DNA of 64,000 bases from Epithemia pelagica. Lineage: Eukaryota; Protista; Bacillariophyta. Positions 5,715 to 63,629 of the stretch are shown piece after piece. Numbering within the stretch: the first letter of the stretch is position 1; every line of letters begins with the position of its first letter. Made by a program: the position numbers and the translations under genes. The notes under the pieces were generated by a model. That model ran no database searches, had not been told where the DNA came from, and saw nothing but the letters and a program-made list of their open reading frames with translations. The stretch spans positions 682,001 to 746,000 of the forward strand of contig OX337236.1 of the NCBI GenBank assembly GCA_946965045.2, in the 5' to 3' direction.

Positions 5715-6319
5715 CCCTTTCAGCCCGGCAAGTCAAATTTTTGACAATTATGTCAGTCATTTCACTTTTTTAGTGACCGCACAAACTACTTAACAAAAAA
5801 GTCAAAATACTCTATGGGTATATCAATCCACGTCACTCCACGTATGCCTAATCTATAGGGAGTGTTCGCCCAGGACTCACCTCCTCTTCGTTTGAAAGTG
5901 ATCATTGATCTTGTGATACCATAGGAGACCATGGACTCTACAAGAGAGTCGGGTTGTCCATTGGTGTTGATGAGAAGTGGTTTTTGGGGTTTTGTATGAA
6001 AATGGGAAATTGGCGATTTCATAACAAGCAGCCGTCAAAATACAAAGTTCTGACTATCGTACGAAAGTACATTACAATACGCTTCATATGTGACAAACAG
6101 TAGGCCTATAACATATTGGTCATTGAAATATGATCGTTGCAAAATCACAAATTTGCAAATTTGGAAAATGACGATATTGTCATCATTTTTTGAATCACGA
6201 GTTGTTGGTCATAACTCACGTTCACGTGGCATTTTGTTAATTGGATTGCAATTTTGTTATGTATTTTTGGTGACAAATTTGTCAGTGACCGGGCCAAAAA
6301 AAGTGCCGGGCTGAAAGGG
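5715..6319. mobile_element. Non-autonomous piggyBac-type DNA transposon (MITE), 605 bp
   Basis: Perfect 16-bp TIRs CCCTTTCAGCCCGGCA (5715-5730) and TGCCGGGCTGAAAGGG (6304-6319), each flanked by TTAA (5711-5714, 6320-6323). Palindromic subterminal TGACA...TGTCA motifs at both ends; no transposase ORF. Confidence 0.9.
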
Positions 6320-6694
6320 TTAATTTTCCCATATGTGCTCGCGATACACAGCGTCCACAATCCACAACAGCGAACAAACGTCAGAATTCAGACCCACGAC
6401 CCACGCGCTTTGGAAGATGGCGTGTACATCTCTCACAAAAATTGCAGATCAACAAAGAAACTGCAAGAATTCTAGAACGTGTCCATCAGTCTCACAACTT
6501 TTATTTGAGGGGCACTTGAAACACAAGTGCGTGAAGAATGAATGTTGGGCCTTTTGGGGAAAAATATTCCCTGAACAATCAGCCTCAAGAAGAGTCTGTA
6601 CATCCATCAAAGAGCAATGACATTGCCGAAAACGACGTGAGGGACCAGGACAGCTTAACCAAAAACGTATCTTCCTTGTCAACCCAGGAAAAGT

Positions 6695-7936
6695 ATGGCG
6701 CTCATGGGATTTGGTCCATATGATGTAATTTGCGGTCGCGACAAGCAGGCATTTAACAATGTTGGCAATCGTCGAATGCGAGTCTTCTTGACCTTGTACT
6801 TGCCTCAATATTTGGACTCCAAAACTCGAAAGGGCAAAAGCAAAATCATTCGGACTGTCGTAGAAACTATGCAAGCCGGTGGGGGTCGCTTTCTCAAGTG
6901 GAATCGAACGGAAAAATCATTTTCGGAGCTTTCAGACAAGGAGGCCCACGCCAAGTGCAGTCATGCATTCCGAGATATGGTGACTGCGCGAGTTACGGTT
7001 TGTGCCAACAATCAAGGGACTGCACCCAAAAAGGGTCGGTCTCGATCGTTGGTATCCATTCACGGGAGTGTAGCCAATACCTACTCTTGGTCGCCAACTG
7101 GCGCAGAGACTAGTGCTACGCCGGCAATACCTACTCGAAGTAAAGTACGTCGAGCGCTTTCTTGTCCAAGCACAATGCAGGGAAGTGGTTCCGATTCCTC
7201 CAGTAACAGTAGTGCTCCTCCGACATTTTCGAGAGATGGGCATGAAACGGAAGACGTCCTACCTGAGGACACGAAACAATCAGCCGAAAATCGTGGAGGT
7301 GGAGAACCAATGAAAGGATTATTGTTGGATGGACCCGAGGACGAAGATGAGTGGGACGAAGAAGGAGAATATGATTGGACGAACAGCAAGCCCGTATCGC
7401 GTGCAACACCCGAACGATATGGAATGAGCATGCGCCGAGAACCGTTTCAGGCCGCCATTGCAGAGGATGGCTTTGATCCTGACACGTTGTCGCTTCCTCC
7501 CGGAAACCCGACTACTTTCCCGGCGTCAATGACCATGGGACATTCCGATGGAGCAAATCAAGAGAGATTGGATGAGCAACCAAAGCTTGGTGTTCCTGTG
7601 GACAGTATCGTGTTCTACAAAGACGATCCAATGGAACTCGACGAACAACCAGAGCCACCAAATCGTCAGGGCGTTGAAAATGTCGAAGAAATTTGTCAGG
7701 AAGAGACTAGTATTAGTCCAAAAGTGATTGATATGATGTTTTCATCGGACGAGCACCATATCGATGAGGAGGAAGAACGAAAACTCTTCCAAGATTTCTT
7801 TACAGATGGAATTCAGGACGCAAAGATGGATGATCCACCCAACTTCGCAGTTATGGAGGAAGAGGACGCTACCGATATCAAAAATGAGGATACATTTGTA
7901 GGAGCTAACAAAACAGATAACAATAGTGTCACATAA
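6695..7936 (+). CDS. DUF6824-domain protein (paralog B), 413 aa
   Basis: N-terminal GPYDVICGRDKQAFNNVGNRRMRVFLTLYL...GGGRFLKW...KCSHAFRD followed by a long disordered acidic tail; clearly homologous to paralog A. Confidence 0.85.
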   Translation: MALMGFGPYDVICGRDKQAFNNVGNRRMRVFLTLYLPQYLDSKTRKGKSKIIRTVVETMQAGGGRFLKWNRTEKSFSELSDKEAHAKCSHAFRDMVTARVTVCANNQGTAPKKGRSRSLVSIHGSVANTYSWSPTGAETSATPAIPTRSKVRRALSCPSTMQGSGSDSSSNSSAPPTFSRDGHETEDVLPEDTKQSAENRGGGEPMKGLLLDGPEDEDEWDEEGEYDWTNSKPVSRATPERYGMSMRREPFQAAIAEDGFDPDTLSLPPGNPTTFPASMTMGHSDGANQERLDEQPKLGVPVDSIVFYKDDPMELDEQPEPPNRQGVENVEEICQEETSISPKVIDMMFSSDEHHIDEEEERKLFQDFFTDGIQDAKMDDPPNFAVMEEEDATDIKNEDTFVGANKTDNNSVT

Positions 7937-8306
7937 GAAGCAACCGGAAGAGCGTCGTATATATGCTTTGTCCTTGACAAGGCACACTTTCGTCACTGCA
8001 AACTTCATCTTGACCTGTCGGTGGATGTAATGATCTTTGTTGTCATTACCCCATATGTGTTTATGAGTGAGTGCTTTGTGTAATGTACTGTTGTTTCCTG
8101 TCAGTTGATGGTTACAAACGCTCCATCTGGAGCCGTTTGTATGCTTTCAAAAGAAATCTATATGCAATGCAGTACTAATAGAACAGGACACTTTTAATTC
8201 TCGTAGTGTCCATGAATCAATAACATTTCCAAGCTCGCTGTATAGAACACACCATCACCATGAATCCTCGTCCTCCTTTTTCCACTCAGCTAGCAGCTGC
8301 CATTCT

Positions 8307-9378
8307 TTAATAGGCCGGTGCTTGTTCGGGCATGTCATTAAGGTTTCCACCAAAGTTGACATTGAATCCTTGATCAACGCCATTGGGACGCGTACACAAC
8401 ATTTCGGGGGTTCCATCCACGACATCCTTGAGACGTGGTTTGACTTGTTCTCGTTGCGCCAAGGCCCCCATTTCTTCCATCATGCGTTGAAAGGGTTGTG
8501 CCATGACGTGTCGTTCATGGTTACAAACGTCGACTTCCATTTGCAATGTTTTGAGCAAGAGAGGATGCAAATCTCGCCAGGACCGATCCACGACTTCGTC
8601 CATCAACAAGTACAAGTCTTCGGCCGCGTCATTGTACAATCGCGTCGCCTCTTGCAATTTCTTTTCGTTCCGATCCAATTTGTCACGGGTGGCCTCTGGT
8701 ACGGCCTTGCCATGATCTTCATACTTTTTCACATTTCCCTGTAGGGACTCTACCTTGGATTTGTAATGATCCGCATCGCGTCGCAACTGGTCCGTGGCTT
8801 TCATGTCGGCATTGACACGGGTTGTGACGGTCGTTTCCCATTCCGCCACATAGTCAATGGCAAACTTGTGAAAGTCATCGGCCTGTTTGCGTGTTTGGCG
8901 GTCCAAGTCATCAATCATGACGCTTGCGTAGGTTTCATTGCCTTCTCTTGTATTTTCCGGGCCGTCGTCCGTGGAGGAACCAGCAATCTTTTCCAAGGGA
9001 GTGTCATTACTCATGGCCGATAACGTTTGAGCGACCTGTGGTACGGGGAAACAAGACACATCAGTCGGTTGAGATCCAAAAAAAAGAACGGACTATAACG
9101 CAATGGTAACAAACAACAACACAGCGATTCGTTGGACACGCACGTACCGCGACGCGTGCTTGTGTGGTGTTGAGAAGGGCGGCATGGCGATCTTTGAGTG
9201 CCTTTTTGACAGTCGTCAACCGTTTGCACATGGTATGGTACCGCAGTCTCAAGGCTTCTAATTCTTCCTTTCCATTGGCCGACTTTTCTCCAAAGGACTG
9301 ACGCAAAATGACTCCCATGCGCGTCTTGTTGCCCTTGTTGTTGTTGCTCATCAACGGACCATTGTCGTCGTATCCCAT
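8307..9378 (-). CDS. BAR-domain-like coiled-coil protein, about 319 aa; exons 9378-9148 and 9035-8307
   Basis: Helical sequence KRLTTVKKALKDRHAALL...DQLRRDADHYKSKVESL...KLDRNEKKLQEA. A 112-nt intron (GTACGT...CAG) joins the two ORFs in phase 0. Confidence 0.7.
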
Positions 9379-48911: not shown

Positions 48912-51736
48912 TTTTGGAGAATGGACACTTGATTCAACCAAAAGTCTTTTGGGAAGTGACTCTGGTAAAGAAAAAGAGAAATGCCTTGTGTGACAAGCAA
49001 ACACGTTGACGACAAACACCTCAAGTCTGGTTCTGTCAAACGAGAGAGTGTGTGAAGAAGATGACTGCAACACGGTCCATTCTTGTCAATCTTGGAAAAA
49101 ACGATGGACCGAATGGCATGCCCGACCAACAGTGATCCAACAGTGATGGAAAACGTGCCTGTGGGTGGCAGTCGTGCTACTTGTTCCGTCTCGGCTGGTT
49201 GTTGGTCGGTAGTTGTGTCTTTGGACGAATCGAGTTCCATCCGATGCTGTCGTCGTCGTTTTCACGAGATGATTTGTTTCCACGACAAAACTTTATGGGG
49301 GGACAATGACGACACACAAGTTTTGTTCCATCCTCCTTCGTCCAATCAACGGTCCAATTCTGTCGGTTGTGGTTGGCACATCCGAATGGGGTTGTCCGTT
49401 GTCCCCCAGCGGATGCGACAGCGGGACTTGAGATGGTAATTGGGGAGTCATTGCTCGAGGTGTGCAGGCGCGCCGGTCATTCTGGGGTTTGGGGGATATC
49501 CCGAATTGTGAGAAGACGATGGTTCCATCTCTGTTGTCTGTTGCGCAGCAGCAGTGATCAGTTGCGACAAGACGACAAAGAACGGCCCGACGATGCGCCA
49601 CAGGACACACAGAAACATTGAGAATACACAACGAAAGCAAAAAGCCACAGCCTTTTGAACCAATGGCTTTCTGCGATGCCATATTCCTGCAGTCAACCAA
49701 TTCTGTACCCATCCTTTTATCTCTGGTATCGAGAATGGATCCAAACTCCCCACGATTGACGACTTTTGAGAAAGGTCCAAGAAGAAGGAATACAAGCGAC
49801 TGGGAAAATTGTACAAGGCCCTCTCCGACGAGAAATTCCAACTTTTTCCTCGTCGTCTTGGATAGTACTCCAGAATCGGTCAAGGATTGGATCATGACCA
49901 TGTCGCAAGAAAGGACGCATCCGATGGATCCGCAAGCGATCATGTTGGAGAGTGTGCATTTTGGAACAGTCACCAAGAAGTACGCCTATACTATTGCGCC
50001 ACGTTGAGTATCCAGACATCAAGGTTGACGAGACGCATGCATTGACTCTGTTGCCGTATCACCAAAGCCTGCTGGTTTTTGCCACTTTGAGCAGTCGCAA
50101 AGCCATTGGGTGCGCGCAAGTTTGGACAGATTCAATCCTACGAGGCCAAGCAATAACAGACGCCGCCCTTTGTTTGGCAGAGTCACTGCTGTCGTGCTAT
50201 GGCAATGAGTGTCGTGGCGTTTGGTGTGGCCACCGCGTCCTTGGTGTACTTGCGCCTCTGTATGCCTACCTCTTGGCATATTCCTACAACAACCCCATTA
50301 TCGTACGCTTGTTGTCGTCTATCAACGAAGTCGTCTATCAACGAGTACCCTGGTATGCAACTGGCAGTATAATAATAATGGCTATACTTTACGGCATGAA
50401 CTGCCAACCCTTGTGTGGTATTGGGAGACGCGATTCTTGGTGAATCTATGGAAATAAGAATCATGAAAGGCATAAGGAAAGCCTACTACAAAGGATAGGA
50501 CCTTGGAAAAGAATGCAACCAAGGACCTTGGCTCGTACAAGCCTTGAGTTGGAAATCAACGTCATCCGCTTTGCCAAGACTACAGAGTTGTGGGTGAGCC
50601 TAGTCCTGATCTATATACACTTGACCAATAAAATTGAGCACTGGGTCATGACGTTGGGATTGAAATCGTCCGCGCATGACAACATTCATGGACTTGCGCA
50701 TCTTCCAAACCAAAATCGGCTTCCATGGCAACAGACATTTCAACGCATGGACCTGACGAATAGGACCGTTGGCATCCATCGGTAGAAGTTGGCTTGTTGC
50801 AGCTGACAACGGTACGTGGTGCGAGTAATGGTAGGAGAGGACAAGAAGGACATTTCAAATGAGAATGTTTACGTATCAGGAATGAGCGGGCTGATTGCGA
50901 TAGCTATTTGCATTCTCCCTCTCGCCATTACTTGAGGTTGTAACATCCTCAGGAAACTGCTACATACGATATAGATCGTCCGGTGTCATCATCCCGCACA
51001 CTACCTACTCCTAGTTTCCTACTCCTACTCATGTCGTACTGTTAATAGGGATAAGGGACACTCCGGTAGACGGCAAACGATGTCCTTTTGTTTTCTTGTG
51101 GCGTTTACTATCCGCATCGTCTACCATGTTGAGATAAGCACCTCTACCTGCCAAGGACCACTCGACACTCGACCCAGAGTTGGAACTTCGCGATTGTTCG
51201 AACCAAAAAACACACGATCGACTTGACGACTCCGTGTCCAAACAAAAAATGAGACAACCACCCAGGCACACAAGTGGGATTCTCGTTTGAGTCTTTGAGT
51301 TGGACACAAATTGGCATTGTCGATTGTCGCTATACAAATGAGAAAAGTGACAAGTGGAAGCACATGTTCGTCCGTCTTTTTTTCGGTCGGCGGACCGATG
51401 GCGGAGCGGACGGCATGCATATGCTAAGTGTTTGAATCCATTCGAACGTGCTGTTTAGGAAACTGTCAACGGCAGGAGCCGCGCCTGTCCAAGTTTTTCG
51501 TTAAGTATTCTTCCAGTTTTCCGTTGGGGTCCCCAAAATCGGAACCAAATGAATGTTCTCGTCTCATTTTTTGTCGATGCCTTCAAGATTTTTTCCTCAC
51601 TCCCACAAAATCGCACCCAAAAAACCACTGATCAAGGATCAAGGTCATTCTCTATTGTGGACCTTATAATCCCCATATCCCTCCATAAATCACCTCTACC
51701 CATCCCGAATCCGTCACGTTAACGCCCTTGACCACC

Positions 51737-52558
51737 ATGAAGTTCCTCCTGGTACTCTGGAGTCTGTTCTCCTTGTTGCAACAGTCTGTTGCATGGTCGC
51801 CCTACGACGACTATTATCCTTCGGAAAAGAGCAAAAAGGGCAAAAAAGAAGCCGACGACTATTACTACGAGGACGATGTATACAGTTCCAAGGGCAAAAA
51901 AGAAAAGTACGACTACGACGACTATTATGACGATGAGAAATATAGCAAGAAGAAGGGAAAGAAGGACATGTACGACGACTATTACGATGATTATTATGAT
52001 GACTACTATCATCATGACGACGATTACTACGATGATTATTATGACGATGACAAGTACAGCAAGAAGGGAAAGAAGGAAAAGTACGATGACGACTACTATG
52101 GATCGGATCCGAAGAGCAAAAAGGGAAAGAAGGAAAAGTACGAGGACGATTACTACCCAGAGACTTGCTCGGTGACGGTGGAAAGCCAATGCATTGGGGA
52201 CTGCGCCAGAACTTACCACGGCGATCGCGCTCTGGGTCGCTACGGTCCTCGACATCCACAATTGATGGAAAGTGAAATGGTCCATGTCGCTCCTTATTAC
52301 AAAGGTGGACGCAAATACTTTTGTCTCGTGGCGGAACCAGGCAATTTCTGTCCCTTCAAGTATGCCACGGCCACGATATGGGTCGACTATGAGGCTATTG
52401 CCGTGGATGTCGACATGTCGGAAGAGGGCGATGGCTACCACTTCTCGGCCTACGAAGGTTCCACCATTACCGTGGTGGTGGCCATTCGGCCTGATCCTAC
52501 CATTCGGTGTATCCAACAAGGCTCCTACTGGTACTATTTGTCATCCGACTATTATTAA
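51737..52558 (+). CDS. Secreted Lys/Tyr/Asp-rich repeat protein (273 aa), cingulin/silaffin-like, with a C-terminal 6-Cys domain
   Basis: Signal peptide MKFLLVLWSLFSLLQQSVA; five SKKGKK(E/D)-type blocks alternating with YDDYY/DDDYY blocks (51794-52159); globular C-terminal region with 6 Cys. Confidence 0.85.
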   Translation: MKFLLVLWSLFSLLQQSVAWSPYDDYYPSEKSKKGKKEADDYYYEDDVYSSKGKKEKYDYDDYYDDEKYSKKKGKKDMYDDYYDDYYDDYYHHDDDYYDDYYDDDKYSKKGKKEKYDDDYYGSDPKSKKGKKEKYEDDYYPETCSVTVESQCIGDCARTYHGDRALGRYGPRHPQLMESEMVHVAPYYKGGRKYFCLVAEPGNFCPFKYATATIWVDYEAIAVDVDMSEEGDGYHFSAYEGSTITVVVAIRPDPTIRCIQQGSYWYYLSSDYY

Positions 52559-52721
52559 ACACTCACGCGAATCCACATCTAAACATTATCCAGAAAATAA
52601 ACTGTTTGTATAATGATATCTAAATGAATGCACGCCACCGATCTAATGAAAGTTGGTATAGACTGAACTTGGAACACAGCTGAGCCGTGTCTCGCTTGTT
52701 TGTACCCTTCGCAGTGCAAAA

Positions 52722-53384
52722 CTATTCGAGACGCAACAAGATATGTACTCCACTGGGTGTTTCCACAATTCCCGAAAGTTGATGCACATCTAATGCATAG
52801 GCCGCACGTTCAAATTCTGGAAACATCGTGTTGCGTTCTAATAAGCCTAAATCCCCCATCCGTTTCGCTGAACTATCATCCGATTCGTGGAGCGCCATGG
52901 TTTGGAATGTGGAAATCAAGGCGCTCGTGTCCGAGTTTGTTTCCCGCAGAGTTTGGAGCAAACGATTGGCTTCCGCAATGGCTTCCTCTCGTGTTTTCAC
53001 AATGGGCACTTGGTGATTGGTTCTCCAACTCATTGGTCGACGAGACTCACAGTGTTTCTTCAAAATGTGTAGAATGCGCACGCGTCCTCTCGAATGTTGT
53101 CGTGTTCTGGAGGTTGCCGTTGAACCAACTTTCCTTTGTCGTTTTCGAGGCCCATGGACGTCGTCCATTTGCTCGAGTTCCACTTCTTCATTATTGAGTG
53201 GCGCCGTCCACGACGACGTACCGGTCGTGACGTCAAAGTAATAAAACTGATTTGGCCTGGATCGTGATCTCTTTCGAACCCATCCCACAGGAAGCCGCTC
53301 ATTATGGGCATTTTCAATCTTGTGCCTGTTAATGTCCTGGGTCGAAATAAGATTCTCCTCAGAGAATCGCACTGTCTTGGCCAT
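52722..53384 (-). CDS. PIN1: Pin1/Ess1-type parvulin peptidyl-prolyl isomerase (WW + PPIase), 220 aa
   Basis: WW domain LPVGW...YYFDVTTGTSSWTAP; PPIase HILKKH..SRRPMSWR, ESDDSSAKRMGDLG, MFPEFERAAYAL..HQLSGIVETPSGVHIL. Confidence 0.95.
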   Translation of the reverse strand: MAKTVRFSEENLISTQDINRHKIENAHNERLPVGWVRKRSRSRPNQFYYFDVTTGTSSWTAPLNNEEVELEQMDDVHGPRKRQRKVGSTATSRTRQHSRGRVRILHILKKHCESRRPMSWRTNHQVPIVKTREEAIAEANRLLQTLRETNSDTSALISTFQTMALHESDDSSAKRMGDLGLLERNTMFPEFERAAYALDVHQLSGIVETPSGVHILLRLE

Positions 53385-53757
53385 GATAGTATGGTCGTAT
53401 AGATAGCTTCGGACTAAAAATGTTATGGTTGTCGCTGCAATAGCGCTATAAACTTGCGAGAGTCTACGTCTGTTATGGTCGATGGACTGAGACTGGTTGT
53501 TTGTGTGCGATAGGATTCAGGGACTGCAGTGACTTTGCTGAGGTGATCGTGTTACTCTTCTTTTTGTTGGGTCGAATAAAAATGTACGCACTGTGTGTTG
53601 GATGCGAGTTGCGAGTGTTGGGCTCGAATTTTTCGGAACATCATCGAACAATTTCCTCCATACACGTCTGGATTCCAGTCGCATATTGGTTGGTCATCCT
53701 TGGGTCGCTTTTGGTTCACGCGTGGCTTTTTTTCCGTGCGCAGTGGTCATTTACACA

Positions 53758-55742
53758 ATGGCAATCAAAACCAGCCTAACCACAGAGGTTCTTGCCATTC
53801 TCTGTATCCTTTGGGGGTCTTTGTTCTTGACAAGATGCGCTGCGTCGTACGAGACGGATCAGGTGTGCCGTTCGGGCGAGAACAACGAATGTCAAGATCG
53901 AAACGACGAGAATGGTCGTGTAGAACATGGCGACGACGAAGAGTGCACATTGTACATTGCTGAATCCACCATCCCCAACGCTGGCTTGGGAACCTTTACG
54001 ACAATCCCACGTCGCATTGGTGATTTGGTGGGAATGAGCGAACTTTGCATTCCGTACGTGCATTTTGGTTACAGTGGGGGGACTGATCCCTTTTTGGATT
54101 ATGTGTGGAATGGCATGACACTGGAAATGTTTCGAGAGCATTTGTATCATGGTCATCTGGAAGCATTTTGTGCCGGTCTTGGATCGGTCGTGAATAGTCA
54201 CTCGGCCTTGATTAATGCCGCTCGGCCTCGTCCAAAGTATGATCCCTTCCTCGTACGACAAGTTCATCCAGGAGCTGGGGCACTAACGCCCTACCACAAT
54301 GCAACATCTACCATTGTTCGAGATATTCCTGCAGGGTACGTGATGATCACGTTTGAACTGTTTCATGGAAATGACATTACTCACCCATTGTGGTGCTACT
54401 CTTTGTTGGATACAACAGCGCGGAACTATTCAAAGACTATGGTGACAACTGGTTCCATCAGAGAACACCACAGATAGGTTATGTAGCTTTGACGCTGCAT
54501 TACGAATATACCGACAAACTAATCAAGAAGCTCTATGGTATAGCGATGCAGCACTCCAATGAGGAGTTGTATGAGGAACTGTACAATTTGTGCATTGCCA
54601 TTCGTGACATTTTCCAAAAAGCGCGTATTCTCAACGGTTTTCCTCCCACATTCAATCAAGCCCTCGTGGCGGCACAACAGTCCATTTCGGCGGCCCACCA
54701 ACTCGATCACATCCGCTCCAATGAATGGCTCCAAACACATGGCCGATGCGTGGATACCATTGTGTCCAAGGATTCCACAATTCCCGGTGCAGGTCGAGGT
54801 GCCTTTGCCAAGACAACCATCCAACAAGGACAAGTCGTAATAACGTCACCCGTGTTGCACGCGCCACAAACAGCACATGACTTCATGGCCAAAGTAAAAG
54901 TTTCGGACGATGCCGAACTCCAAAAGCGCTTGTTTCACTGGGACAAGGTGGAATCATACCAGCTACTTCTGAATTACTGTTTTGGCCATGCCGAATCGTC
55001 TCTTCTCTTGTGTCCAAACGGTGGAGGTGTCGGTTTGATCAATCATGCAAAGAATGGTGTCGCCAATGTTCGAGTTCAGTGGGCTCAAGACTTTTCTGCG
55101 CACCGCCATGACATGGTCCACAATGCTACTCTGGAGGACTTGGAACAGGTTCATACGTCCGTCTTTCTCTTTGAATTCGTGGCGTTGCGAGATATTGACA
55201 AGGGAGAAGAGATATTAATGGACTATGGTGACGACTGGGAAAGAGCCTGGCAGTCCCATCAAGAATGGTGGCAACTTTCCGGCATTCGAGATACTCCCTA
55301 TGTTAGTGCAATCGAAATGAACCAAAAACTGAGGGACGCAGTTATTCGCACCACTTTAGAACAAGAGAAAGATCCTTACCCATCCAATGTTGAGATTCGC
55401 TGTCACCCAAACGTAGTGAAGAATAATACGTGGCACTATACATGGACGACACAGCACCATGGGCATTTGTGTCGAGTATTGGACCGGTATCCGACCGATG
55501 ATGGGAACGATTGGTTGTATCTTGTCGATGTGGAGGTGTGGCCTTTTGAATATGTTATGTTTCGACCTCCGCAAAAGCGCCAAGCCCATGTGGGACAACT
55601 TACCAGGGGCCGTGTCCCGCGACGGGCCCTCCGATTTTTCGACGTACCCGGAACAACCGATCTTCATATGACGTCAGCCTTTCGACATTGGATTGGAGTA
55701 CCAGATGATATATTTCCTGATCAATGGCGGAATAAAAAGTGA
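53758..55742 (+). CDS. Signal-peptide-bearing tandem (double) SET-domain protein, diatom type; intron 54336-54418
   Basis: Signal MAIKTSLTTEVLAILCILWGSLFLTRCAAS. SET1: ESTIPNAGLGTF...VVNSH...RDIPAG|AELFKDYG. SET2: STIPGAGRGAFA...LINH...VALRDIDKGEEILMDYG. The 83-nt intron is phase 2. Confidence 0.85.
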
Positions 55743-56299
55743 GAACGTTGGCTAGGAGGCTCTTTCTCGAGAACATGGTCTCGCAGCCTGTTGCTTTCCA
55801 GCTTGTTGCTTTTCAACCTCAGTTCTCCCTTGGTGGAATATGCAGTCCATAAGATGAAAGTCGCGTCTATTGGAAATATGCGTGTCCACAGACAGGTGCC
55901 TTTATTTTCTCTCAAGTGACCGTTTGAGCAGACGGGTTGAGCGTACGTCGACGGGGTGACCTTGACCCTTGACCGTAGCTATCAACTACTCCTATCAAGA
56001 TCAACCTTGTTTTGCTAAGTGTTGCTTTCAAGTGTTGCCGGACAGGTTCAGTTTGATTGTGAGTTGCGAGTCCATTAGGAGTGGAGAAATCTTGCTTTTA
56101 TAGACCGTTTCCAAGTACTCCTAGGACTAGGAGAATAGGCTAGAGGTAAAAGAATGAAAAAAAAGGTTATTGACTCTTAGTTAGGAATTCATACCCGCAC
56201 AGTTTGTCCGCCGTCCAACGCTCCAACAATGCAAAATCCATAACCATAAAAGCAGCGAACGGTTCGATCATTAGGCCTTGTGTTGTTCCAAATTGGATC

Positions 56300-56688
56300 A
56301 TGGTACGTTGATTACGAAATGTTGACAGAGTCGAATTGTCTATATAGTGTGAGCTGACGGTCTCTTTTGCATTTCCGTTTCGCAGTCAGAGTTTATTGTG
56401 AATCCGAAGCCATTCTTGATGGATCTTACAGGGAAAATGGTAAAGGTGAAACTAAAGTGGGGGATGGAATATCAGGGGAAACTTCAATCAGCGGACGCTT
56501 ACATGAATCTTCAATTGACAAATTGTGAAGAATTCCTGGATGGTCAATTTGCAGGGTTTTTGGGAGAAGTCCTAATTCGATGTAACAATGTCCTGTACAT
56601 TCAGGCTCTGCCGGCTGATGATCAAGCCGAAGTGAAAGAAGAAGATGCCAAAGGATCCGCCGATGCGATCATGCAAAACAACCAGTAG
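56300..56688 (+). CDS. SNRPF: Small nuclear ribonucleoprotein SmF; first exon is the ATG only (56300-56302), intron 56303-56385
   Basis: [42 protein letters not shown]...[14 protein letters not shown]. Confidence 0.95.
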
Positions 56689-57293
56689 AATGGGGGATCA
56701 AATGAGCTGTTTGTTTTACGTGCCAAACACGTAGGGATGGGTAAGTTGGCTGTTCGGATGTTACAATCTTCGTGTTTATTTTTGTGTTTGCTCAAAGAGG
56801 AGAGAAGGAGTCCGAATCGTATCAAGGCCAAGTACCGCGAGGTACTTGTTGTTGTGGAGAAGTAGAGAACGAATTCTCCGAAAGGAGAATCATCTCTTCG
56901 TCTTTACCTGCTTTGTGCGGCTGCGAATCAACTACAAGCGTTGTGGACCACACGTGGCTTAACAACCACACCTACCACACACCCATATCTGAGAGATTGC
57001 ATCACATGAACAACGGCCCTTTGCGTTTTGACACAGGAAGTCTTTTAGTTTCTCAATACATCTACTTGCTCTACTTTTTCTATCATCACAGAACAATTCT
57101 TGAAGGTCTCACTGCCAAGACCATTTCGCTTTCCAGTTCCGCTGTGAGATCTTTTGTTCAAATGTGGTACAAAGGACCAGGCTAACGCCAAACCAAATTA
57201 TTCGGGATCACATTTCGAGACATTGACTGATCAGCTTTACCCCAATGCGTGAAGCACGTAGAATCACTTTTGAATAGACGATCGGTCACAACT

Positions 57294-57747
57294 CTACTTG
57301 AAAAATAGTACATGGAGGGCCATGATGGCACATCCAGCACCGACATAGGGTGAAAGACGTTCTCCTATCCGAGAAAGTTTCCATAGAAAACCAACAACCC
57401 CCTGGCGCTTCAAATGGTGATCTGGTTGGGTTCCGGTGGCATTCATTTGTTGTTGCTGCTGCGGTTGACCATTGCTGTTGTTTCCCTGTTGCTGTGATAG
57501 CGCTGCTAGCTCCTACATGATGCAACACAGAGAGTCGTGAGAGCTTTTGCCTTTCAGGGTCATTTGGTCGGAGAACCCATTGGTTCATCGATCAATCCAT
57601 CATATTCGTTCGAACTCTTGACAATCGACTTCTTACCAAGGGAGAATGATCAAATATGGTTGGTCGAAGCTCGCGAAGATATGTGCAAGTACATATCAGT
57701 AGCAATATAATGGTTACAAGGCTGGAGAAATCAAAGAAAGCAGACAT
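57294..57747 (-). CDS. TMEM167: Protein kish (TMEM167/DUF1242); exons 57747-57637 and 57512-57294
   Basis: [25 protein letters not shown]...[30 protein letters not shown]; 124-nt GTAAG...TAG intron. Confidence 0.9.
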
Positions 57748-58010
57748 GGTGTGCTTCGACTTTGAGTTAGAAGAAGCGTTATGGACGACGATTTGCTTCC
57801 ACCATTGCCCGACTGCTCGCCCCCAAAATCCCCCCCCAAAGGTTTGCATCGGGGGTTGTGTGTTGGGTGACATAAAAAGAGGGGCGGCTTCTGAGGGGGT
57901 CGGGCAACTACCTACTCCTACCTAGGTGTATGCGTAAGCGATATGAATAATCAAAACGGGATGGTCCAAAGAATGGATCTCCCTTACAACAACTATCCTT
58001 ATCTTTAGGA

Positions 58011-59099
58011 TTACTTGGAATCTCTTTGGTTTTTTCCCTGAACGGCTTGATCTGGATTGACGGGCTGTTTGGGTGGGGTAAAGGATTGCGACTGAGACTT
58101 GGCCGGTTCTTGTAGCACATTATACAAAATGGCATTGTCTTGCGCCAGTTCTGGATGGACAAACAAATAGACAACATCGGACGAGGTGGAGGACGACGAT
58201 GACGACGACGTTTTGATGTTGTCGTTGTCCAGTGACGTGTCGGTATGTGCCACAAGATTGGAGAGTGGATGCAAAATTCCAGAAAAAGGACGCAATCCAG
58301 TTTCTGGATCAAACACATGATCTTTGCGAGATAGAAACATGGTCCGTGTCGTGGCTTTGAACAGCAAGGACGAGGAACCGAGATAGGTTGGGGATTTTCC
58401 GTGTGTGACCACCCGCTTTTGTTGTATTTCCAGGACGTAGGGTGAAAACACGTAGGTAATGGCGGCCGTCGTGGATAGAGTGCCAAACGCAAAGGTGCCG
58501 CAAATTAACCAAAAGGCCAGAGAGGAAGGATCATATTGCTGCGTTTTTTCGGACAATACCATGGCGATGGGTAGTCCAACGATACCGGCAACGCAACTAA
58601 AGAGCGATACCCCACGCAAGCGCATAATGGAACCATCGTAGGGGCTCTCATAAATTGTTGTCCATTCACCGTCGTCTTGTTCTTTATTCATGTCATCGTC
58701 TTCTTCTTCTGTTTTCTTGTTGTTCTTGTTGTCGTCGTCGTCCTCTTTGCTCTCTTCACTGGATGATGAAGAGGAAAAGCGACAGGGCGAATGATGTACA
58801 GATAGTGGTGAACGAAGCAACGTTGCGGAACCAATCCACGATCCTCCATATCTGTGCCATGAAGTCCTGATCCTTCTGTCGACGTTTATTCCTTCTTGTC
58901 CAGAACTGAAATTTTTGCATGACACGGAGTATGTTCTTTGAGAGAACGAACCTTGGACTTCATGGCCACTCGAAAGTTGTGATAAATGTCGAAGCATCCG
59001 TCCCGAATTTTGTTGTCGCAACATTATTGTTGTTTGGGGAGCCTTTCTTACGGATTGCCCCGTCAGGATAAGGATCTGTGACATGTTGGTTGCGGCCAT
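58011..59099 (-). CDS. TMEM70: TMEM70-family mitochondrial membrane protein
   Basis: Mitochondrial-type presequence; TIYESPYDGSIMRLRGVSLFS, two TM helices, YVFSPYVLEI, TRTMFL and PFS motifs. Confidence 0.75.
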   Translation of the reverse strand: MAATNMSQILILTGQSVRKAPQTTIMLRQQNSGRMLRHLSQLSSGHEVQGSFSQRTYSVSCKNFSSGQEGINVDRRIRTSWHRYGGSWIGSATLLRSPLSVHHSPCRFSSSSSSEESKEDDDDNKNNKKTEEEDDDMNKEQDDGEWTTIYESPYDGSIMRLRGVSLFSCVAGIVGLPIAMVLSEKTQQYDPSSLAFWLICGTFAFGTLSTTAAITYVFSPYVLEIQQKRVVTHGKSPTYLGSSSLLFKATTRTMFLSRKDHVFDPETGLRPFSGILHPLSNLVAHTDTSLDNDNIKTSSSSSSSTSSDVVYLFVHPELAQDNAILYNVLQEPAKSQSQSFTPPKQPVNPDQAVQGKNQRDSK

Positions 59100-59290
59100 G
59101 GTAGATTGGATGGAATCTGATGAGTGATGAGAGAATCTTGAAAAAAATCCGGCTCATAACCTGTAGGGAGTATTTGTCTCATGAGTCCCGCTGCGACATA
59201 TCCTCGAACAATGACACATCCGACGCAAAGACCTCTTGGAACGAGATTTTTCGTCGTCGATCTGATGGCCATGAATGAATGAGAGGAGCC

Positions 59291-60517
59291 ATGGCGGATG
59301 CCACCCACTCCAACAAGGACGCAAATGAGGACGACGCCGTGGATGACGAAGTGGAGTTGCGTGCCGCGGTACAATATACCGTGATGCAAATTATTCAGCA
59401 TGAAGAAGATCGGCAACAATTGACCACGGACCATCGTTCGACGGCCACGACGACCACCAGTGCGGCCATGAATAGCATTGCGGAATTGACCTTTTTGTAT
59501 GCCACACAATCGTTAGGTCCTGATTTGGTGGCCTTTGCCAATCATCGTCGATCCACGGCATCGTCGTCGGTGTCCTCCTCCAAGTCGACGACGACTGCAA
59601 CACTGGCCAAAATCACACCGGCAGATGTTCAATTGGTGGCCCGCAAATGTCCCTCCACGGTGGAAAAGTTGAAGGAATTTACCGCACAAGTCGAAGAAGA
59701 AAAACAGGAACATGCGGCGACCAAGAAACAATCACGTCGACGATCGTCCAAACAGCAACACGAAAGCAATGATAACAAGGACGACGATGACGAAGAGTTG
59801 ATTGATATCCAACAACAACTGCAAACACCCAGGAGTGATGCGAAAAAGAAAAAGAAAGATAACAAGAAGAAAAAAGACAGCAAATCCATGTCATCGACGA
59901 AAAAGAAGAAAAAACAAGAAAAGAACAAGACGCCGATCTATTCGATTGATAGCGAGAGCAGCACTACCAGTGATGATGAAGATTTGCAAGAAGTACTGCA
60001 AGCAACGGCACATGTGGATCGGGATCTCGAATGGTCACGCAAATCGCTGGAATCGGAGCAACAAAAACATGGCAAGAAGAGTACAAGCTCCAACAAGAAG
60101 CCAGAAACGTCGACTTTTCAAAATATACTGGAGATGAAAATGTCATCGTCATCTTCCGATAACAGCGACGACGAAAATATGCAAGCTGGTAACAAAAAGA
60201 GTAAGAAGAAGAGAAATGGGGAATCGTTAAGCGGTAAACCAAAAAAGCAACAACCAAAAAAGAGCATGAATGGCAACGAAACTAGGACCTCTGGTGGTGA
60301 AGGACGGAAACGGTCCTCCACTGACACTTCCACGGGTCCGAATCACCGTCGATTCCGGTTTTCCGTTGATCGAAACGCCGACAAGAAGAAGGAGGATGCA
60401 TTGGATCTAGCAACCAAAAATGACAGTGACGACTCGAACGATGCCCTCGAAAGTCCTTCCAGTTACATTCGTCCCTCGGCCAAGATTCAAGCCCTCCTGG
60501 ACCAAGAATCGCCTTGA
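59291..60517 (+). CDS. CENPS: CENP-S/MHF1 histone-fold protein with a long charged C-terminal extension (408 aa)
   Basis: LRAAVQYTVMQI...AMNSIAELTFLYATQSLGPDLVAFANH...ITPADVQLVARK. Confidence 0.85.
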   Translation: MADATHSNKDANEDDAVDDEVELRAAVQYTVMQIIQHEEDRQQLTTDHRSTATTTTSAAMNSIAELTFLYATQSLGPDLVAFANHRRSTASSSVSSSKSTTTATLAKITPADVQLVARKCPSTVEKLKEFTAQVEEEKQEHAATKKQSRRRSSKQQHESNDNKDDDDEELIDIQQQLQTPRSDAKKKKKDNKKKKDSKSMSSTKKKKKQEKNKTPIYSIDSESSTTSDDEDLQEVLQATAHVDRDLEWSRKSLESEQQKHGKKSTSSNKKPETSTFQNILEMKMSSSSSDNSDDENMQAGNKKSKKKRNGESLSGKPKKQQPKKSMNGNETRTSGGEGRKRSSTDTSTGPNHRRFRFSVDRNADKKKEDALDLATKNDSDDSNDALESPSSYIRPSAKIQALLDQESP

Positions 60518-61120
60518 GAATGATCAGAAACCCCTACCAGAACCGAGACCAGATGATTGTGAACCAGTGCTCTGTTTGGTGCTGGTAAACAAGTTCAACC
60601 ATGTGTCGGTGTGGGTGGGAGCTTGCCTTCCATTCCGTCAGCCAGCGTTTGGTCTGTAAACTGCAAACATCGCACAACGAGATGACCCTTTGCATCCCTG
60701 CTCTTGTTCTGGTATGATGAAACCAAAACGACCTTTGAGTGAACTTGTGAAAGATCAGCTTCAGAACCAAACATTGGAACAAAGAGGCCTGCCCCATGAG
60801 AATGGTAGTTCGTCTGCCAGTGACCCTATCAGGTCATCATAGCCACTTTTGGTTGCACTGATCACTGATCTCCATCCAAGCCTTTGTGGTAGCGGAAGAC
60901 ATCTAAACTAGTCCTTAACGTTCCAATCTACCCATTTAACTATCCAATCCCCTTCTCTCTTCTTTGACATACAAATGTACCATTCACGAAGAAACTTGAG
61001 GACCAGCGTCCTTCGTGTCCAATGCCCAAAACAGTTTTATGTGGTAGTAGCCATGGCTCGGTCCCATCGAAACGCTTTCGTTCCCATAATCCCTAACCAA
61101 AACACGGACTCTTTATCCAT

Positions 61121-62017
61121 TTACTTCTTGGTACCAATGAGGGACAAGAAAATGTTAAAGGCGATTTGGACCGAGTTGATAAAGACGAGACGGTGCTTGG
61201 TGGAGATGAACTTGAAGTTGACGGCATGCACCAAGGGCCAGACCTTCCAGGATCCTTGACAGGCGGAGAGCAAGTCATTCTTGATCTTGTTGCCAATGGT
61301 GGCAAAGGAATCTCCATCGCACAAGCCCAAGTAGGTGAAAAAGACAGTCATAAAGAGGGGGCACCACAAGGTTTGGTCAATAAAGACCTTGAGGGCGACA
61401 ATCTTGCCCGAAGTACCTTCGATTTTGCGGTCCAACCAGTTGTAAAAGTAGTGACCCGAGGGACCGTGGTACAAGAAACCAAAGGCCGACAAGGTGATGA
61501 ATCGCTTCATGTCAAACGGTCCACCACTGATAAAGATCTACAAAAGAATCAATACAAGCAAACAAGACACGTGACATGAGATCAAGAAGCATGATAATGT
61601 TGCCAATCCGACACCTACAACAGATTCGAATGCCAACAACTACTGCCGACGACCCAAAGTACGTCTTGGCACTGGCCACAACCCGAATCTCGTACGTATT
61701 GGGGTTCGAATCATTCTTACCTGTGCCAACAAGTCACCCAAGGCCCATCCGACCAAGGAGGTCATGGCCTTGGTGATCAAGGGCTTCTTGTCCAAGGCGT
61801 CGTTGTAGGCGGCCCATCCTGGAACAGCACCACCTCGCACCACGGCCGGATCGCGAAACAAGGGACTCTTGGTGGCCACGGTGTTCTTGTGAAAGGCCGA
61901 AGGCACCTTGTCGGTGGTGACCAAGGCGGACTTTCTCGTCAAGGACGGATCCGAACTGACACCGAATGCCCGAACGGCAAAGGAAAAGGACAAGAGCAAA
62001 ACACAAGTCAACTTCAT
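61121..62017 (-). CDS. Mpv17/PMP22-family membrane protein, predicted plastid-targeted (237 aa); intron 61720-61538
   Basis: Signal peptide ending VRA-FGV (ASAFAP-like); YNDALDKKPLITKAMTS..GDLLAQ, GPSGHYFYNWLD, KVFIDQ, WKVWPLVHAVNF. Confidence 0.9.
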
Positions 62018-63629
62018 GGTTCTATCGGCAATTGTTGGGATTTGAAATGGCAACAACAGAACTGACACCAAAGATGCTGTCCACCCACGACGAGAGACGA
62101 GATGCGTGAGGCATGTTTGATTGGGTGGTATCACTGCTTCCGCTACAGGGTATCTTAGTACCGAGCGGGCTCGAAGAAAGGCAGACTCTCATTGTATACA
62201 GAAACACGGAGTGTATCGCGCCGGACGATGGCAAATCACGCATGCACAGAGCCTACGACGGCGTGTGGCGATCTTTCTGGGTTGAACATGGAGCCATGGT
62301 CCCTTTTTTTGTGTGTCGGAGCTGCATCTGTGCGCCTGCGTGCGTGTGTCGATATATGCGACTGAACACGTGGGAAATGGAAATCTGACGTCAGTCTATT
62401 AGAAACTACTCGCGAGCGATCCGGGTTCACTTAGTATAGAAAGAATAAGTACAAAGTAGCTTTTCCACGCTTCGAGTTTAGAAGCGACCGCATCACGGAC
62501 TGTTCGCGCGCCGACCCCGCATTATGTGAACACAGAACAGCTAAATGTGCGCACGAACGTCGAAGAAAGACGAGAAACTCAACCAGAATGTCTTCTTTGT
62601 CGTCGTCGCTCTTCCTCGGCCCCCCTTTGTCACACTGAGTTTCTGTTTGGGATCTTTGTTGGTTGGGTGTTCTCTCTCATCGTTGTCTTCCTTCTTGGGT
62701 TACCCCCAAGTAGGGGTGAGTGGTCGCATGTGTGTCGTGCTTTTGGTGTGCAAACTCTTACTCACCCCCAAGGCGCGACCTCTGAGCTCCCAGTACTGAC
62801 ACAAACCTCCAAACCACCAACCAGTCTCATCGCGGCAATGGAGATATGGAGCCGTGCTTAGGGATCCTACAATGTCTTCTTCGTCGCACAAACGCCGTCG
62901 CATTTCCCAGAAATCCATTAGGAAGCTACATGCTTCCCGCGGCATGGCCATTCCTCCTGCATCCGAAGCAAAACAAGAATCAAGTGATCCTATCGCCGAC
63001 ATGGCATCTCACCTTTCTTATTGTCACGTGTTGCATTGAATGGATCAATGGACATTGAAACCACTCACCAAACATTGGACTTCTCTACAGATCACTTAAG
63101 CTTGTCGACCTGCATAACGCATGGCCGAACAGCCATTAGTCTCATCATGCCACAGTAGGAGCATTTACTTGTCCCTTCAATTGACACAACTGACAAATGT
63201 TGTGATACGAGACATTTCTACTCATAAACATTGCTAATTTGATTTTGTTGAGACCCTTCTTGCTATTCCTGTCGTCATCCATCCACTCCATTTTCATTTC
63301 TTCGCTTACATGAAACATGTCCAAATCATCGTCCATAAAGCTGCACACGGAGGCTCCCAAATCAGAGCTAGAAAAAGCCGAGAAAAGCGCCCAGACGGTG
63401 GGAAACGACGTGAAGGTTCCAGCATCTCGTCCCATAGGACCACAAATGGCAGATACCCAATCACAGAGAATCACATTTCCACTCGGTCCAAACACATTTC
63501 GTAGTCATTTTCAGTAGTTTTACATTTTGTTTCGACCAAAATGTTAAACGGATGGCTGTCTCTATGACAGAGTGACTTTCTCACTTCCATGATCTGATGA
63601 GAATATCTGTCTACCACATTGTCAAAGGT

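Follow-up and report, generated by a model that had tools for sequence, protein, structure and literature searches.

A Lys-rich protein gene of Epithemia pelagica with a signal-type leader (the Lys-block gene), a Pin1-type isomerase gene and a SET methyltransferase gene are probably three independent nuclear neighbours, which came to lie together by chance, were then inherited within a block of about nine genes and do not form a dedicated enzyme-substrate locus. Initial annotation of the window, i.e. the whole stretch of 64,000 nucleotides that was analysed, had suggested that the first and the third gene are a substrate-modifier pair. What stood of this suggestion is that an enzyme of the type of the diatom BacSETs lies beside a secreted protein with KxxK blocks. 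The specific link between the two was not supported, as the genes are separate units with Pin1 on the opposite strand between them, belong to the larger block, and the SET genes at the other loci examined have no such neighbour.

Gene order and the double-SET protein

All three genes were found where they had been annotated (Table 1). The Lys-block and SET genes are both on the plus strand, and the ATG of the latter, at position 53758, lies exactly 1,200 nt beyond the stop codon of the former, in agreement with the annotated distance of 1.2 kb. Pin1 is, as had also been stated, the sole intervening gene; it is encoded on the minus strand, convergent with the Lys-block gene and divergent from the SET gene. 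The SET gene thereby has its upstream spacer in common with Pin1 and not with the Lys-block gene, and the three genes are separate eukaryotic transcription units. Pfam identified the rotamase domain of Pin1 (PF00639, E 1.5e-16) and its WW domain (PF00397, E 5.9e-6), the latter with 26.6 bits, just below the cut-off of 26.9 bits. An ortholog of Pin1 is present at the corresponding position of the collinear locus of E. clementina. Rfam families were found neither in positions 50000-58500 nor, with a more permissive search, in positions 56650-57300.

Table 1. Features of the locus, in coordinates of the window (slashes mark predicted cuts)
Feature	Position	Strand	Basis or remark
Lys-block gene	51737..52558	+	
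Signal-type leader (aa 1-19)	51737..51793	+	read from sequence; predicted cut S-V-A/W-S, Trp at +1
Low-complexity polyampholyte region (aa 20-139)	51794..52153	+	composition and block positions; five Lys blocks alternate with Asp/Tyr runs
Six-Cys beta-sandwich domain (aa 140-273) and stop codon	52154..52558	+	profile search, AF2 model
Pin1-type peptidyl-prolyl isomerase (WW + rotamase), 220 aa	52722..53384	-	Pfam
Spacer, 373 bp	53385..53757		from coordinates; separates the divergent start codons of Pin1 and the SET gene
SET gene	53758..55742	+	
SET exon 1: leader (aa 1-29), acidic linker, most of the N-terminal SET module	53758..54335	+	48% identity to P0002 residues 13-204
SET intron, 83 nt, GT..AG, phase 2	54336..54418	+	splits the Gly codon before A-E-L-F-K-D-Y-G; ORF frame change
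SET exon 2, including stop	54419..55742	+	Pfam SET PF00856, E 8.9e-9; 54% identity to P0002 over 440 aa
Last strand of the N-terminal module (E-L-F-x-x-Y-G), then helical linker	within 54419..55742	+	
Canonical C-terminal SET module	about 54741-55250	+	
Conserved C-terminal beta domain, SET protein	about 55389-55739	+	

The SET gene has one intron and encodes a product of about 632 aa, in which a signal-type leader precedes two SET modules that are homologous to each other. The splice was confirmed by contiguous alignment of the exons with P0002, the annotated ortholog from E. clementina (exon 1 to residue 204, exon 2 from residue 206). A gap equivalent to the intron was also present in the E. 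clementina locus, and paralogous first exons were found in the E. pelagica genome. The two exons were searched separately, and structure prediction was carried out on P0002 in place of the full-length protein. Every top Foldseek match of the P0002 model (AF2, pLDDT 88) was a SET methyltransferase, and comparison of residues 313-482 with minimal SET enzymes (VIA) gave a Z of 8.1 and an rmsd of 2.5 over 112/114 residues. The leaders of both the Lys-block and the SET protein were judged by eye, from a hydrophobic core and small residues at -1 and -3. In the SET protein a hydrophobic core of 14 residues is followed by C-A-A/S, and the P0002 model begins with an N-terminal helix and a disordered linker. 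The product would enter the ER by means of this N-terminal signal or signal anchor.

Pfam detected only the second SET module in this protein. Nevertheless, the annotation as a double-SET protein proved true, since the family profiles of the two modules matched each other (hhalign probability 98.4%, E 7e-15) and three homologues showed two SET stretches in Pfam. The C-terminal module carries the motifs I-N-H-A and E-I-L-M-D-Y-G, and its residues N412, H413 and Y474 are invariant across 73 homologues; judged by these motifs, it is likely to be an S-adenosylmethionine-dependent lysine methyltransferase. In the N-terminal module V-N-S-H-S (family consensus N-C) aligns with I-N-H, while the Tyr of E-L-F-K-D-Y-G is retained. 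This module may be weakened or may serve to hold the substrate. Both the change from N-H to N-S or N-C in the first module and the double-SET build are family-wide in the homologue alignment.

To our knowledge, the lysine methylation of diatom silica proteins has so far been assigned to no enzyme, and the BacSETs are the standing candidates. In the works that cite it (PMC11151724, PMC11554505, bioRxiv 10.1101/2020.11.23.393678), the report of Nemoto 2020 (Mar Biotechnol 22:551) is given as the source for BacSETs as a diatom-specific secretory SET family, and the same works describe them as proposed to methylate either silica-forming wall proteins or long-chain polyamines. In the literature BacSETs are multi-copy genes co-expressed with wall genes, with 24 in Seminavis and 12 in Skeletonema. 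The search for relatives of the SET enzyme yielded 779 homologues at E <= 1e-5. Among the best 120 of these, all matches named by organism were from diatoms, while most matches carried no name. The diatoms named were Epithemia, Cylindrotheca, Pseudo-nitzschia, Cyclotella, Fistulifera, Mayamaea, Skeletonema, Seminavis, Detonula and Cyclostephanos. The E. pelagica genome itself contains at least 25 BacSET loci (47 exon-level matches, corresponding to some 28 genes in about 20 places). The SET gene shares with the BacSETs a SET domain behind a putative secretory signal, named homologues from diatoms only and multiple copies that are often in tandem, and shows no feature that sets it apart from them. 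It belongs to this family, with membership defined by these features and by the descriptions in other papers rather than by named BacSET sequences. The SET domain, the signal-type leader and the diatom-only named homologues thus uphold its annotation as a diatom-specific SET enzyme of secretory type.

The Lys-block protein and its relatives

The Lys-block gene encodes a product of 273 aa, in which a signal-type leader is followed by a stretch rich in Lys, Asp and Tyr and by a six-Cys beta-sandwich domain. Residues 22-140 comprise 32 Asp, 30 Tyr and 27 Lys out of 119, i.e. 75% of the total, and the polyampholyte region is net acidic. The Lys blocks are of the type S-K-K-G-K-K-E-K; four of the five contain at least five Lys per 12 residues and one contains four. 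With 16 KxxK motifs and five such blocks behind a leader recognised by eye, the protein agreed with its description as KxxK-rich and secreted. The blocks fall in a diverged 57-nt repeat, and the DNA identity of only 60-73% between units indicates that the repeat is no recently arisen microsatellite. Across the 60.5-Mb genome, sequence coding for K-K-G-K-K-E was matched 16 times, three of them in the Lys-block gene, as compared to eight for a reversed-pattern control.

The Lys-block gene is single-copy in the E. pelagica genome. Two tandem copies of its homologue are present at the corresponding place in E. clementina. In one of them the Lys-block character has been kept while the region has been rebuilt from a 36-nt unit (G-G-K-K-E-A-K-S-D-D-Y-Y), indicating that the blocks are under selection; in the second copy, the Lys blocks are almost gone, with its position kept. 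The leader junction is likewise A/W or A/Y in both E. clementina homologues, so that the +1 residues of the three Epithemia proteins are W, W and Y. The protein has no Pfam family, a search of the ESM Atlas gave no usable match, and a word-index search at E <= 0.001 found no relatives of the repeat region. By sequence comparison, the Lys-block protein is restricted to Epithemia, with relatives only in E. clementina.

In a profile search against 1.84 billion representatives, the C-terminal domain gave full-length matches to the two E. clementina proteins and to about seven small secreted proteins. The latter appear to be bacterial; one is named, MGD1845820.1 from a Salibacteraceae (Bacteroidota) MAG. 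They share with the Lys-block protein a domain of about 125 aa, the motif C-x-G-[DE]-C, the Cys pattern and 23-32% identity. The bacterial-looking proteins consist of the bare domain and occur in tandem arrays of six genes, whereas in the Epithemia proteins the Lys/Asp/Tyr region and an inserted loop rich in Arg are added. The AF2 model of the domain (pLDDT 81) has eight strands, and its six Cys would form disulfide bonds. Foldseek gave weak CBM35/CBM6/PA14-like matches (best E 5e-4, TM 0.38-0.43, identity 12-14%).

Silaffins are characterised by a Ser-rich composition and by an RXL propeptide site behind the leader. The Lys-block protein has a signal-type leader (by eye) and the Lys clusters and KxxK motifs of a silaffin, but neither the Ser-richness, as only 8 of the 119 residues of its repeat region are Ser, nor the RXL site; no Arg was found directly behind the leader, the first one occurring beyond residue 155. 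Also in common with silaffins and the silica-targeting pentalysine clusters, both attributed to Kroger, Poulsen and Sumper in a work citing them (bioRxiv 10.1101/2021.09.18.460806) as the published background, are the density of KxxK, the four blocks of five or more Lys in 12 residues and the zwitterionic character. The acidic partner of Lys is, however, encoded Asp and not phospho-Ser, the C-terminal domain is folded, and there is no sequence homology.

Membership of the Cingulin-Y family is decided by composition and by location in the girdle bands. Cingulin-Y of Thalassiosira and AC3362 of Amphora coffeaeformis (PMC4220933) are secreted, as the Lys-block protein is predicted to be, and like it have Lys-rich segments that alternate with Tyr-rich ones. 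The likeness is one of composition only, as AC3362 is Pro/Thr-rich with K-G repeats while the Lys-block protein is Asp-rich, and no homology of the repeat region to either protein was detectable by word search. By its composition the Lys-block protein resembles the Lys/Tyr-rich proteins of the diatom wall matrix; it may be associated with the wall, and BacSETs in general could act on it.

Conservation of the adjacency and rival explanations

The E. clementina locus is collinear with the window, with the order Lys-block gene, Pin1, SET, LSm, Kish, two unnamed genes and Mpv17. The block comprises about nine genes, including unrelated housekeeping genes, and covers about 10 kb in the window; its left end is exactly the Lys-block gene. 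The two Epithemia species are roughly 35 My apart, and their genomes have been reported to be without large syntenic blocks (PMC12377750). At the other SET places of E. pelagica, no secreted Lys-cluster ORF was found in 190 kb (one 10-kb left flank at each of 19 places) or in nine 4-kb loci. A single Lys-cluster ORF near the paralogous SET locus L029 was rejected, as it was an (AAG)n tract. Outside Epithemia, seven loci from six species or assemblies were investigated, namely those of Cylindrotheca, Mayamaea, Fistulifera, Cyclotella and Seminavis and an ENA genome with the closest non-Epithemia co-orthologues; no Lys-block-like neighbour was present within 10 kb of their SET genes. The co-orthologues in the ENA genome were 47-49% identical and likewise lacked this neighbour. 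The microsynteny proposed as a check was thus found in E. clementina, but only inside the block of about nine genes, and was absent at the seven other loci. Given about 20 SET places, a total of 20,203 genes (PMC12377750) and several tens of genes for Lys-rich secreted proteins, roughly 0.1-0.2 pairs of a SET gene and a gene of the latter kind would be expected within two genes of each other.

The SET and Lys-block genes therefore appear not to be coupled, and chance adjacency followed by inheritance in the block is the explanation that we favour. Three observations count against it: the pair has stayed together for about 35 My in genomes reported without large syntenic blocks, the blocks are under selection, and they present KxxK, the setting in which silaffin lysines are methylated. 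The rival is a dedicated writer-substrate locus, in which the BacSET would act in the ER or Golgi on the Lys blocks encoded next to it, the two genes staying linked through co-regulation or co-adaptation. This is improbable. Both products have signal-type leaders, the blocks are overlapping KxxK motifs, the adjacency is kept in E. clementina with two tandem substrate candidates, and the collinear block ends on the left exactly at the Lys-block gene; yet the conservation extends over about nine genes and is not specific to the pair, Pin1 intervenes on the opposite strand and faces the promoter side of the SET gene, and from the second E. clementina copy the Lys blocks have nearly disappeared, although it has kept its position. 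Moreover, co-orthologous SET genes elsewhere do without such a neighbour, the pattern is absent at all other SET places examined, and at least 25 paralogous enzymes could serve equally. The most far-reaching form of this idea is very doubtful, namely an Epithemia-specific wall or silica protein in which a bacterial-type beta-sandwich is fused to a hard-wired zwitterionic 'silaffin' region, with the Lys blocks methylated specifically by the adjacent BacSET and the pair kept for about 35 million years.

It is also conceivable, albeit unlikely, that the Lys-block protein has no relation to silica or lysine methylation. It might bind polysaccharides or coacervate by itself, as a protein of the extracellular matrix or an adhesive, with Tyr sulfation conceivable at the Asp-Tyr runs, or might be routed from the ER to the plastid. 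The best structural neighbours of the beta-sandwich are carbohydrate-binding modules, although these matches are weak (TM about 0.4), and the sequence relatives of the domain are small secreted, bacterial-looking proteins. The low Ser content and the absence of an Arg, and hence of an RXL site, directly behind the leader likewise differ from classical silaffins. The composition is, however, compatible with a role in the wall, as the secreted, Lys/Tyr-rich AC3362 of Amphora was shown to reside in the insoluble matrix that accompanies biosilica (PMC4220933). Plastid routing would agree with the aromatic +1 residue of the three Epithemia proteins, but the six conserved Cys and the acidic stretch after the leader fit secretion better than a transit peptide.

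Value of the locus

If true, the enzyme-substrate pair would be the first assignment for any BacSET, and it could be tested with one peptide and one recombinant enzyme. At present the locus offers a convenient candidate substrate for such a test rather than a biomineralisation 'module'. Two smaller gains were obtained from the individual genes. The BacSET family is built of two homologous SET modules, with an altered cofactor motif in the first, and an Epithemia-only secreted protein combines a Lys/Asp/Tyr repeat with a domain otherwise found in bacterial-looking proteins.

Gene layout and the double-SET enzyme

ORF listing, Pfam and direct reading of the sequence confirmed the three genes where the initial annotation had placed them. 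The SET gene starts exactly 1,200 nt beyond the stop codon of the gene for the Lys-block secreted protein, on the same strand as claimed. Pin1 does lie between the two genes; its minus-strand orientation, a detail absent from that annotation, makes it convergent with the Lys-block gene (163 bp between them) and divergent from the SET gene (373 bp), so that any promoter sharing of the SET gene would be with Pin1.

Window coordinates of the genes and features described in the text
Feature	Position	Strand	Remark
Lys-block protein (gene 1)	51737-52558	+	273 aa; ORF listing, Pfam, direct reading
Aromatic residue after predicted signal-peptide cut	51791-51799		
Six-Cys beta-sandwich	52154-52555		
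Arg-rich loop	~52205-52276		
Pin1-type isomerase (gene 2)	52722-53384	-	ORF listing, Pfam, direct reading
SET gene (gene 3)	ATG 53758; intron 54336-54418	+	ORF listing, Pfam, direct reading
Non-coding block between LSm and Kish genes	56791-56997		

The single intron of the SET gene (83 nt, GT..AG) splits a Gly codon immediately ahead of A-E-L-F-K-D-Y-G. In alignments to P0002, the annotated ortholog from Epithemia clementina (54% identity), exon 1 ends at residue 204 and exon 2 begins at residue 206, and tblastx comparison revealed an equivalent gap at the E. clementina locus. Used unjoined as separate queries, exon 2 showed a Pfam SET domain and exon 1 on its own gave no Pfam match. The two beta-rich modules, excised as profiles from a 73-sequence alignment of the family, matched each other in hhalign with a probability of 98.4% (E 7e-15, 139 columns), and Pfam detected two SET stretches in homologues of Cyclotella, Fistulifera and Mayamaea, indicating that the double-SET build described initially is genuine and shared across the family. 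In the AF2 model of P0002 (pLDDT 88, pTM 0.85), a helix at the N-terminus and a disordered linker precede module 1 (74-220); a helical linker connects it to module 2 (318-480), which is followed by a C-terminal beta domain. Every top Foldseek match was a SET methyltransferase, and VIA-align mapped minimal SET enzymes to residues 313-482 (Z 8.1, rmsd 2.5, 112/114 residues). Module 2 has the N-H and the motif Tyr, both invariant across the 73 sequences; module 1 has the motif Tyr, with N-S at the expected N-H position in the window gene and N-C in the family consensus.

At E <= 1e-5, 779 homologues were obtained, and, among the best 120, all matches naming an organism were from diatoms. The window enzyme is an ordinary member of the published, biochemically uncharacterised BacSET family, as judged from its features and the descriptions in other papers. 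Passages in PMC11151724, PMC11554505 and bioRxiv 10.1101/2020.11.23.393678 credit the family name to Nemoto 2020. Other papers describe 24 BacSETs in Seminavis, which peak alongside wall-formation genes at cytokinesis, and 12 salinity-responsive BacSETs in Skeletonema. Exon 2 gave 47 exon-level matches in its own genome (60.5 Mb, 23 contigs), which corresponds to some 28 genes spread over about 20 places, with several in tandem. Three of these matches (G000:C8:683225-688710), spaced 2,065 bp apart, scored almost identically, which points to a putative recent tandem triplication; more clusters were observed at C11:1767-1781 kb and C2:1552-1561 kb.

The Lys-block protein

The leader, judged by eye, has a hydrophobic core followed by an S-V-A|W junction. 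The residue after the signal-peptide cut matters for diatom plastid targeting; the +1 residue after the predicted cut was aromatic in all three Epithemia proteins (A|W, A|W, A|Y). Of the 119 residues in the region behind the leader, 32 are Asp, 30 Tyr and 27 Lys; the lysines form five S-K-K-G-K-K-E-K-type blocks, four of which reach at least five Lys per 12 residues, and the protein has 16 KxxK motifs. The blocks are encoded by a 57-nt repeat whose copies are mutually only 60-73% identical, indicating that the array is old and maintained. The coding pattern for K-K-G-K-K-E is rare genome-wide (16 sites, three within this gene; eight for the reversed-pattern control), and the gene is single-copy in the E. 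pelagica genome. The protein matched no Pfam family, and a word-index search and the ESM Atlas revealed no relatives of the repeat region.

The protein closes with a Cys-bearing C-terminal domain, a six-Cys sandwich modelled with eight strands (pLDDT 81), for which the best Foldseek matches, all weak, were CBM35, CBM6 and PA14 modules. A profile search with this domain, covering 1.84 billion representatives, gave full-length matches to the two E. clementina proteins encoded beside the orthologous SET gene and to some seven secreted proteins 140-170 aa long, and partial matches to PPC-type repeat domains; among named eukaryotes, the domain was found in Epithemia only. One small six-Cys homologue comes, by its annotation, from a Salibacteraceae MAG (Bacteroidota), and others make up a tandem array of six genes adjoining guaA and a his operon (L041 4976-8472), so that these homologues appear bacterial. 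This distribution suggests that the domain may have been acquired horizontally and then fused to the repeat region. The sandwich of the Epithemia proteins contains an inserted Arg-rich loop, about 20 residues long and modelled with low confidence, which is missing from the bacterial homologues. In each of the three Epithemia proteins, this loop includes an R-x-L tripeptide (RAL, RDL, RKL), the motif at which diatom wall proteins are usually processed.

The Lys-block protein is a new, lineage-restricted protein that is predicted to be secreted. By composition, its nearest characterised counterpart is AC3362 of Amphora, a Lys/Tyr-rich secreted protein located in the insoluble biosilica-associated matrix (PMC4220933), a resemblance without homology. 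Because of this composition, the protein is a reasonable test substrate.

Conservation of the gene pair

The best named relative of the window genes was E. clementina, in which the locus L012, collinear with window 51764-62033, contains two Lys-block genes, Pin1 (minus strand), SET, LSm, Kish/DUF1242, two unnamed genes and Mpv17. The tandem Lys-block copies have diverged: copy 1 (6221-7003) keeps the alternation of Lys and Asp-Tyr, but is built from a different 36-nt unit and has seven G-G-K-K-E-x-K units, and copy 2 (7844-8479) has lost these repeats, with a Gly/Met-rich stretch in their place. The adjacency of Lys-block and SET genes is kept, along with that of some seven unrelated neighbours, and is best read as inherited gene order rather than as selection acting on the pair.

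Pairing in other diatoms, proposed initially as one check of the functional link, was not observed at the SET loci examined outside Epithemia. The closest of these SET genes (47-49% identity, ENA assembly ERZ25042306) form head-to-head pairs surrounded by transposon genes, and homologues of Pin1, LSm and the Lys-block gene are all absent within 10 kb. No secreted Lys-cluster ORF was found at the SET loci examined in Cylindrotheca, Mayamaea, Fistulifera, Cyclotella and Seminavis. Nor was one detected in the E. pelagica genome when the 10 kb to the left of each of 19 other SET places, together with nine loci of 4 kb, was scanned; a lone Lys-cluster ORF near a paralogous SET locus was an (AAG)n artefact. 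If the genome holds some tens of Lys-rich secreted genes and about 20 SET places among its 20,203 genes (PMC12377750), chance would be expected to put roughly 0.1-0.2 such pairs no more than two genes apart, and finding one when the whole genome is scanned is not surprising. With conservation in E. clementina read as inherited order, no counterpart at the other SET loci examined and the promoter side of the SET gene facing Pin1, the dedicated modification locus proposed initially is unsupported, and it is unlikely that the SET enzyme and the Lys-block protein form such an enzyme-substrate unit.

In Fistulifera solaris (L038 2577-9575), the region upstream of a tandem BacSET pair holds four orphan genes whose products are poor in Lys and have signal-type leaders, three with an R-R-L-G-R-A-L-type motif and one without. 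Between the LSm and Kish genes of the window, a non-coding block of about 205 nt shares about 88% identity with E. clementina, and its flanks do not align. The block is single-copy in the E. pelagica genome, matches nothing in Rfam up to E <= 1 and folds into hairpins with GCGA and GAAA loops and two compensatory pairs, making it a candidate unclassified structured RNA.
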